Positions 26,685 to 39,655 of a stretch of 64,000 bases of DNA are shown one piece after another. Made by a program: the position numbers and the translations under genes. A model generated the notes under the pieces. It was not told the origin of the DNA, did no database searches, and saw nothing but the letters and a program-made list of their open reading frames with translations. The stretch lies in the NCBI GenBank assembly GCA_964247055.1, contig OZ176050.1, positions 5,642,001-5,706,000 on the forward strand, given 5' to 3'. The stretch is from Paragordius varius. Lineage: Eukaryota; Animalia; Nematomorpha. Every line of letters begins with the position of its first letter. Positions within the stretch are counted from its first letter, which is position 1.

Positions 26685-39116
<12,432 letters not shown>

Positions 39117-39246: not shown

Positions 39247-39655
39247 TTATTTTTTGAAAAATTTAAAAACTTTATCTTTAAATTTATTGGTTTGCAAAAT
39301 TATGTTATCGGCTAAATGAGTATCATCATCTGGTTTGTGGGTGTTGATCAATTCTTGGTCCTTTTCGCATGGCTGTAATTTATATTTATCACGAATGTTC
39401 TCACGCACTTCAGCACGTTTCAAACTCCTTTCCAACGCCATTTTTTCTTTAAGTCTAAAAATAGGTTTTAAAATACTTTTTTTGTTTTTCGAATGCTTTT
39501 CTTGCTTCTTCAGACATGGTCGGCATGACAGGTACCGATGATTCGTTTTTGTCATTGGACTTTCCTTCTATTTTATCAACGATTTCATTAAATCCTTCAT
39601 TAAATTGTTTAACAACAGGGTTCGAACCAACTGCATATTTAATTAAATGGTCCAT
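39247..39655 (-). CDS. CPLX: Complexin-like (synaphin family) SNARE-binding protein, 128 aa
   Basis: Exons 39655-39477 and 39454-39247 joined across a 22-nt GT..AG give MDHLIKYAVG...MSEEARKAFEKQKKLKEKMALERSLKRAEVRENIRDKYKL...KDKVFKFFKK*. The RAEVRENIRDKYKL segment matches the complexin central helix (RxxxRxxIRDKYxL); size and amphipathic termini also fit. Confidence 0.7.

Follow-up and report, generated by a model that had tools for sequence, protein, structure and literature searches.

In the horsehair worm Paragordius varius we identified what is probably (we put it at about 0.85) a genuine 22-nt U2-type GT-AG spliceosomal intron, at 39476..39455 on the minus strand of the window (the whole 64,000-nt stretch of contig OZ176050.1 analyzed here, C1:5642001-5706000 in our genome coordinates; the genome, G000, comprises 110.5 Mb in 44 contigs). 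It is the sole intron in the coding region of a small complexin-like gene of nerve-terminal type. The reading, first proposed by an initial annotation of the letters alone, is supported by the codon and phase of an intron in an orthologous gene, by a gapless protein alignment across the junction, and by introns of 23–26 nt in CCT chaperonin genes of the same genome.

Two open frames separated by 22 nucleotides

The window is very AT-rich, with a GC content of 0.22–0.35 across its length. On its minus strand, a run of seven A residues (39483..39477) is followed by GTATTTTAAAACCTATTTTTAG (39476..39455, 22 nt) and then by ACTTAAAG. The 22-nt segment starts with GTATTT and ends with TTTTTAG and so carries GT and AG termini. 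The frame opening at the ATG at 39655 runs for 66 codons and ends at TAG 39457..39455, which is the acceptor triplet itself, so that retention of the segment brings translation to a stop at its own acceptor. A second frame, shifted by +1, extends from 39555 to a stop at 39249..39247 and from 39453 reads LKEKMALERSLKRAEVRENIRDKY...FKFFKK. When the 22 nt are taken out (phase 2, split codon AA/A, Lys), ...AFEKQKK is linked to LKEKMALE, and the two open frames split by the segment become one complexin-like gene of 127 codons. Re-reading the minus strand, we found the coordinates and letters given for the segment in the initial annotation to be correct throughout, and both the restoration of frame and the in-frame TAG on retention that it had described were borne out. 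Its idea that retention might be regulated is pure speculation and unsupported. The features of the locus are as follows.

39477..39655, minus strand: exon 1 coding sequence; ATG (39655..39653), 59 codons (MDHLIKYAVGSNPVVKQ...AFEKQK) and the AA of the split Lys codon
39510..39515, minus strand: weak alternative donor GTCTGA, the proposed start of a 61-nt intron; rejected as the main form
39477..39483, minus strand: A7 run at the 3' end of exon 1 (CAA AAA AA/), within conserved Gln-Lys-Lys codons
39455..39476, minus strand: probable 22-nt GT-AG intron, phase 2; positional homolog of Gordionus L035:4186-4224
39457..39462, minus strand: putative branch-site A (39462) and T5 tract, as we infer
39247..39454, minus strand: exon 2; third base of the split Lys codon, 68 codons (LKEKMALERSLKRAEVRENIRDKY...FKFFKK) and stop TAA (39249..39247), with the complexin central-helix motif

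Other ways of removing the segment were tried and rejected. Use of the next AG (39448..39447) would give a 30-nt intron that keeps the frame of exon 1 and meets a stop after 11 codons. A U12-type intron is not indicated by the sequence or by what is generally known of that class, as the donor is not GTATCCTT. Nor is there any need to invoke DNA-level excision, as of the internal eliminated sequences (IES) of ciliates, when the ends are GT-AG and the position of the intron is conserved.

Gene identity and the Gordionus ortholog

A phmmer search with exon 2 against 1.84 billion protein representatives returned a single match, P0001 (CAK9299097.1; 152 aa, E 7.2e-5, 57% identity), from the horsehair worm Gordionus sp. 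m RMFG-2023, with its locus on OX940785.2. A word-index protein search with exon 2 gave no candidate, and exact look-ups of both ORFs in public assemblies found nothing on record. The match of P0001 with the window gene extends from the initial Met (MDSFIKLAIGQNPVVKQ versus MDHLIKYAVGSNPVVKQ) to the C-terminal FK.KV...FK motif; exons 1 and 2 were each aligned to it separately, not as one joined product, and in exon 1 identity extends to 31 of 55 aligned residues. Across the junction, Gordionus reads EKQKK-AKEKAAFERTIKRAEVR and the window EKQKK-LKEKMALERSLKRAEVR; with the 22 nt taken out, the two align without a gap.

The Gordionus gene occupies 498 nt for 152 codons, the difference being one 39-nt GT-AG intron (L035:4186-4224) that follows CAA AAA AA. 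Thus the comparison with an ortholog that the initial annotation had suggested yielded an intron at the identical Lys codon and in the identical phase 2. Because the 39-nt segment contains an in-frame TAA it must be removed, and because 39 is a multiple of 3 a homopolymer error cannot be invoked to explain it. The comparison is with one ortholog (n=1) and relies on the Gordionus DNA rather than on its annotation, since the gene model there is an automatic BRAKER prediction (10.1101/2023.06.26.546503).

At the DNA level, the exon end (C-A7), the GTAT donor, and a 3' module of the form (C/T)CTA(A)T-T5/6-AG, T-rich before a terminal TAG, are conserved between the two species, while about 17 nt between the donor and this module are absent from the window intron. 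From the dinucleotide frequencies of this strand, the probability of finding GT and AG at both positions fixed by the ortholog is ~0.0015, and that of finding GTA and TAG there ~0.00014. The two introns also share the consequence of retention, a premature stop. They differ in that the Gordionus intron is 17 nt longer, the extra sequence lying downstream of the 5' splice site and ahead of the presumed branch site; in the presumed branch region itself (TCTAAT in Gordionus, CCTAT in the window); and in that the Gordionus intron, a multiple of 3 in length, leaves the frame unchanged, whereas the 22-nt intron shifts it. Beyond the complexin-like gene itself, nothing at the Gordionus locus matches the window in a comparison of synteny.

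We propose that the 22-nt intron would be removed by the major spliceosome, with the A at 39462 (intron position 15, the eighth base from the 3' end) as the likely branch site. This would place the 5' splice site 14 nt from the branch and the branch 7 nt from the 3' end, followed by T5-AG. The assignment draws on five sequences, and the A followed by T5 aligns with TCTAAT-T6 of Gordionus. Because both ends of the window intron still align with the Gordionus intron, we suggest that an ancestor of ~40 nt shrank to 22 nt by losing ~17 nt from the region that separates the 5' splice site and the branch site. The spliced product would have 127 residues, with a long accessory/central helix running straight across the junction.

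The window gene is, as judged from its sequence, a divergent complexin-like paralog so far seen only in hairworms. It resembles complexin/synaphin (PF05835) in its 127 residues, an N-terminal M-x-x-[LF]-I-K, a long central helix, and a basic-hydrophobic C-terminus, and the central-helix motif R-x-x-I-R-D-K-Y (R..IRDKY) can be read directly in exon 2. In contrast to members of that family, both the window gene (exon 2, about 21–22.4 bits over profile positions 62–100) and its Gordionus ortholog (23.8 bits) score below the Pfam gathering cut-off of 27. We regard it as a divergent paralog, and do not file it as a Pfam member, because of this score and because a canonical complexin, scoring 46–51.3 bits, is present on contig C5. 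The latter (L002:1440-1668 and 2335-2505; G000 C5:2127056-2128121) has its intron elsewhere, of ~660 nt, at profile position 73 after ...QGIRDK. Of note, the N-terminal frame of the C5 gene (..KIFIKFCANNLGGL..) meets an upstream TAA before any in-frame ATG, and a nearby ATG lies in a different frame; its start may require a further upstream intron, possibly a tiny one.

AlphaFold2, run on P0001 as a single sequence (mean pLDDT 64), gave one helix, residues 51–85, that spans the junction residue K66, with block-mean pLDDT of 86–92 for residues 51–80. The argument of the initial annotation from an uninterrupted helix thus holds for the ortholog. A SNARE-binding central helix in the window gene is suggested by the presence of the motif and by the predicted helix of the ortholog. 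The chance of 127 stop-free codons at local composition is ~5.5e-5, and comparison with Gordionus gave pN of 0.27 and 0.32 and pS of 0.63 and 0.76 for the two exons, pS being near saturation; from these sequence comparisons, both exons look constrained.

Chaperonin micro-introns and the alternative readings

A scan of 126 kb for open reading frames bridged by GT..AG segments of 15–80 nt failed to discriminate, finding 499 GT-AG bridges against 449–672 for control dinucleotide pairs of like composition. For this reason we turned to homology-anchored checks of single candidates: CCT chaperonin genes were located in the genome with PF00118, and their short introns were checked by the homology of the flanking exons. 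The following introns were found.

L008:1798-1820 (G000 C4:3727811-3727789), minus strand: CCT-zeta, 23 nt; flanks align to TIGR02347 positions 2–43 and 45–66, with the split codon at 44
L033:1397-1421 (G000 C1:9887284-9887308), plus strand: CCT-delta intron 1, 25 nt; flanks align to PDB 4b2t_D
L033:1475-1500 (G000 C1:9887362-9887387), plus strand: CCT-delta intron 2, 26 nt; joins GMDKM to IKSKNGDVSITNDGATIL, where Pfam position 18 begins
L010:1793-1816 (G000 C6:5287892-5287869), minus strand: CCT-alpha, probable, 24 nt; in-frame TAA, just after IRSQN
L017:1567-1602 (G000 C2:9804720-9804755), plus strand: CCT-gamma-like, 36 nt; in-frame, containing TAA and TAG, between AILRE and IAVKHPAAKSM

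The two CCT-delta introns are consecutive at the start of the gene, with a 53-nt exon between them, and their flanks correspond to contiguous parts of human or bovine CCT4 from PDB chains; for the 25-nt intron, 4b2t_D is matched up to residue 45 and again from about 47/48, the split codon and the first residue lying between. For the probable CCT-alpha intron, the downstream flank starts at residue 23–24 of TCP1 chains, and the upstream flank is short and has no match. Thus GT-AG introns elsewhere in the 18–30-nt range, for which the initial annotation had suggested a search, do occur (23, 25 and 26 nt, verified by homology, and 24 nt, probable), all of them in CCT genes. The shortest intron verified by homology is that of 23 nt, one base longer than the intron in the window. 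The 36-nt CCT-gamma intron shows that short introns here are not limited to lengths below 30 nt. Candidates of 35 nt (CCT-alpha) and 42 nt (another CCT gene) had real-looking acceptors, but their upstream flanks were not coding and they were rejected.

In each of the five micro-introns (22–26 nt, including that in the window), a T-rich stretch follows an A located at –7 to –9 relative to the 3' end, and a GTA start is found in 4 of the 5, as in 10 of the 18 ordinary CCT introns listed. None of the CCT micro-introns of 23–26 nt adjoins a homopolymer. The remaining CCT introns that could be placed measure 246–1250 nt, and tiny and ordinary introns therefore coexist in this genome. In the window itself, ordinary introns are seen in the gene for RPB2, the second subunit of RNA polymerase II, which comprises at least 16 exons between 26685 and ~39030 on the plus strand and runs toward the complexin-like gene, 3' end to 3' end. 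The first introns of RPB2 measure about 60–70 nt, and all those examined are about 60 nt or longer; the initial annotation had put the other confidently modeled introns of the window at 65 nt or longer. The GTATTT donor that the initial annotation had noted in other genes does recur, in the RPB2 intron at 27405 (as GTATTTT), in a CCT intron, and in a CCT-delta micro-intron.

Outside the CCT genes, a candidate 19-nt GT-AG intron lies in an Xaa-Pro peptidase-like gene (L017:717-735, minus strand; G000 C2:9803888-9803870); its flanks give weak matches (E 0.026 and 0.001) to more or less adjoining segments of PRK10879, and if real it would be shorter than the 22-nt intron. A candidate of 23 nt lies in a HAD-hydrolase-like gene with DKDGTL upstream (L020:717-739, minus strand; G000 C1:9022054-9022032), where family matches are weak.

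We lean, with some reserve, toward the view that horsehair worms, or at least this species, possess a distinct class of micro-introns of ~19–26 nt, shrunk from introns of ~40 nt to a 5' splice site plus A-T(3–5)-AG, and that introns hundreds to thousands of bases long occur beside them in the same genes and the same genome.

The initial annotation had itself listed an error in the A-run, a 61-nt intron, and slippage as alternatives to the 22-nt intron, each of which is contradicted by the Gordionus ortholog. Sequence next to a homopolymer is a classic spot for assembly errors, and the break in frame falls directly at the A7 run, where a change of one base (a true run of A6 or A9) would restore the frame with no intron at all, the protein reading through as ...KQK(K)SILKPIFRLKEK... 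Such a protein would, however, carry seven extra residues, SILKPIF, one of them a Pro, within a helix that in the ortholog runs unbroken; moreover, the independently assembled Gordionus genome has the same A7 followed by an unquestionable 39-nt intron at that codon, GT and AG stand exactly where the ortholog requires them (p ~0.0015), and the other micro-introns of this genome do not lie beside homopolymers. We consider an assembly error very unlikely. A 61-nt intron that began at the GTCTGA donor (39515) and shared the acceptor of the 22-nt intron would restore the frame equally well, 61 and 22 being equal modulo 3, and could serve as the main or an alternative isoform. It would remove 13 residues, SEEARKAFEKQKK, that align with DEDVRIAQEKQKK of Gordionus at 8 of 13 identities and include EKQKK; its GTC start is absent among the donors seen here, and the donor of Gordionus is homologous to position 39476. 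We put its probability slightly lower still. Ribosomal frameshifting or transcriptional slippage on the A-run seems to us the most improbable of these readings. A AAA AAG belongs to the classic –1 slippery heptamers and stands here in the correct zero-frame register, but the –1 frame meets a TAA after two codons, and the shift needed to reach the downstream ORF is +1. The product would also contain a 7-residue insertion missing from the ortholog, and in Gordionus the same heptamer precedes a 39-nt intron without any change of frame. The conservation of A AAA AAG (39477–39483 on the minus strand of the window; L035:4179-4185 in Gordionus) most likely reflects merely its Lys codons, because the –1 frame stops at once and the Gordionus intron leaves the frame unaltered.

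A dead or crippled gene is a different kind of alternative, and one that we regard as unlikely, if somewhat less so than the foregoing: an intron of ~40 nt would have lost ~17 nt and dropped below the length that can be spliced, leaving a truncated product of 66 residues or a transcript that decays. At 22 nt the intron is indeed shorter than the shortest verified here (23 nt), and the word-index search and exact look-ups of the ORFs were blank. Against this, both exons are intact and constrained, and introns of 23–26 nt interrupt CCT subunit genes, which we infer to be essential and single-copy. Since those introns lie in CCT genes, the local spliceosome handles introns of this size, and sizes within one base of 22 nt must be spliced. 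We therefore favor the 22-nt intron as a functional one.

Comparison with known ultra-short introns

Animal introns shorter than ~30 nt were long regarded as annotation errors. Introns below ~30 bp had been considered absent from animals, and a survey of 51 genomes found them only in myxobolid myxozoans and Dicyema japonicum, without mention of Nematomorpha in its main text (PMC13644364, 2026). Ultra-short introns were validated there by their positional conservation between conserved exons (PMC13644364), which also cites Lu et al. 2019 and Zverkov et al. 2019 for introns of this kind. The background offered by the initial annotation, that such introns are reported in dicyemids and some protists, is correct as far as it goes and slightly out of date, in that myxobolid cnidarians have now also been published (PMC13644364).

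The introns described here (22–26 nt) resemble those of myxobolids and Dicyema, which are GT-AG introns of 20–27 nt, in being shorter than 30 nt, in having a donor reduced to about GTA, and in being validated by positional conservation; in those animals, the branch site is assigned to weakly conserved A residues lying shortly before the AG. They differ in several respects. In myxobolids and Dicyema the whole distribution of intron lengths is short (medians 22–27 bp) and the genomes are reduced, whereas here the micro-introns lie beside ordinary ones (CCT introns of 246–1250 nt and RPB2 introns of about 60 nt and longer), which is not a regime of general compaction. The acceptor here also retains a T-tract, and the host lineage is ecdysozoan.

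Among protists, Paramecium has introns of 20–33 nt, and the introns of the Bigelowiella nucleomorph are 18–21 nt. Like the intron in the window, these have canonical GT-AG ends and lengths close to the physical minimum, and their retention typically leads to a premature stop. Unlike it, they belong to a uniform regime of tiny introns, without a coexisting class of long ones. The same comparison applies to the ciliate Stentor, whose introns, as cited in the survey, are 15–16 nt (PMC13644364).

If the class proposed above is real, it would represent a third independent origin of animal introns below 30 nt, the first to involve a genome without global intron compaction, and it would mean that an ordinary bilaterian spliceosome can work with ~14 nt from the 5' splice site to the branch point. 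The complexin-like locus provides a clean, ortholog-anchored case of a sub-30-nt intron in an ecdysozoan. With a length of 39 nt in one hairworm and 22 nt in the other, this intron indicates which portion can be lost, namely that separating the 5' splice site from the presumed branch site.

There are also practical consequences, as gene finders and RNA aligners with a minimum intron length of 20–40 nt break or miss such genes. The Gordionus genome, with a GC content of 26.93% like that of the window, was annotated by BRAKER from STAR-mapped RNA-seq, and introns are never mentioned in the paper (10.1101/2023.06.26.546503). The low completeness of hairworm genomes (BUSCO 71.6% for Gordionus) might in part stem from missed micro-introns.

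Two minor features of the window deserve note. The heptamer GTATTTT is present in 72 copies, whereas shuffles that preserve dinucleotides predict 45.5 ± 6.6 and in no case out of 100 reached 72. In the RPB2 intron region, a GC-rich stretch at 30706–30736 on the plus strand contains a motif, GGTTCGAA, that resembles a tRNA T-arm; ARAGORN found no tRNA in this stretch, which may be a SINE or a tRNA-derived remnant.
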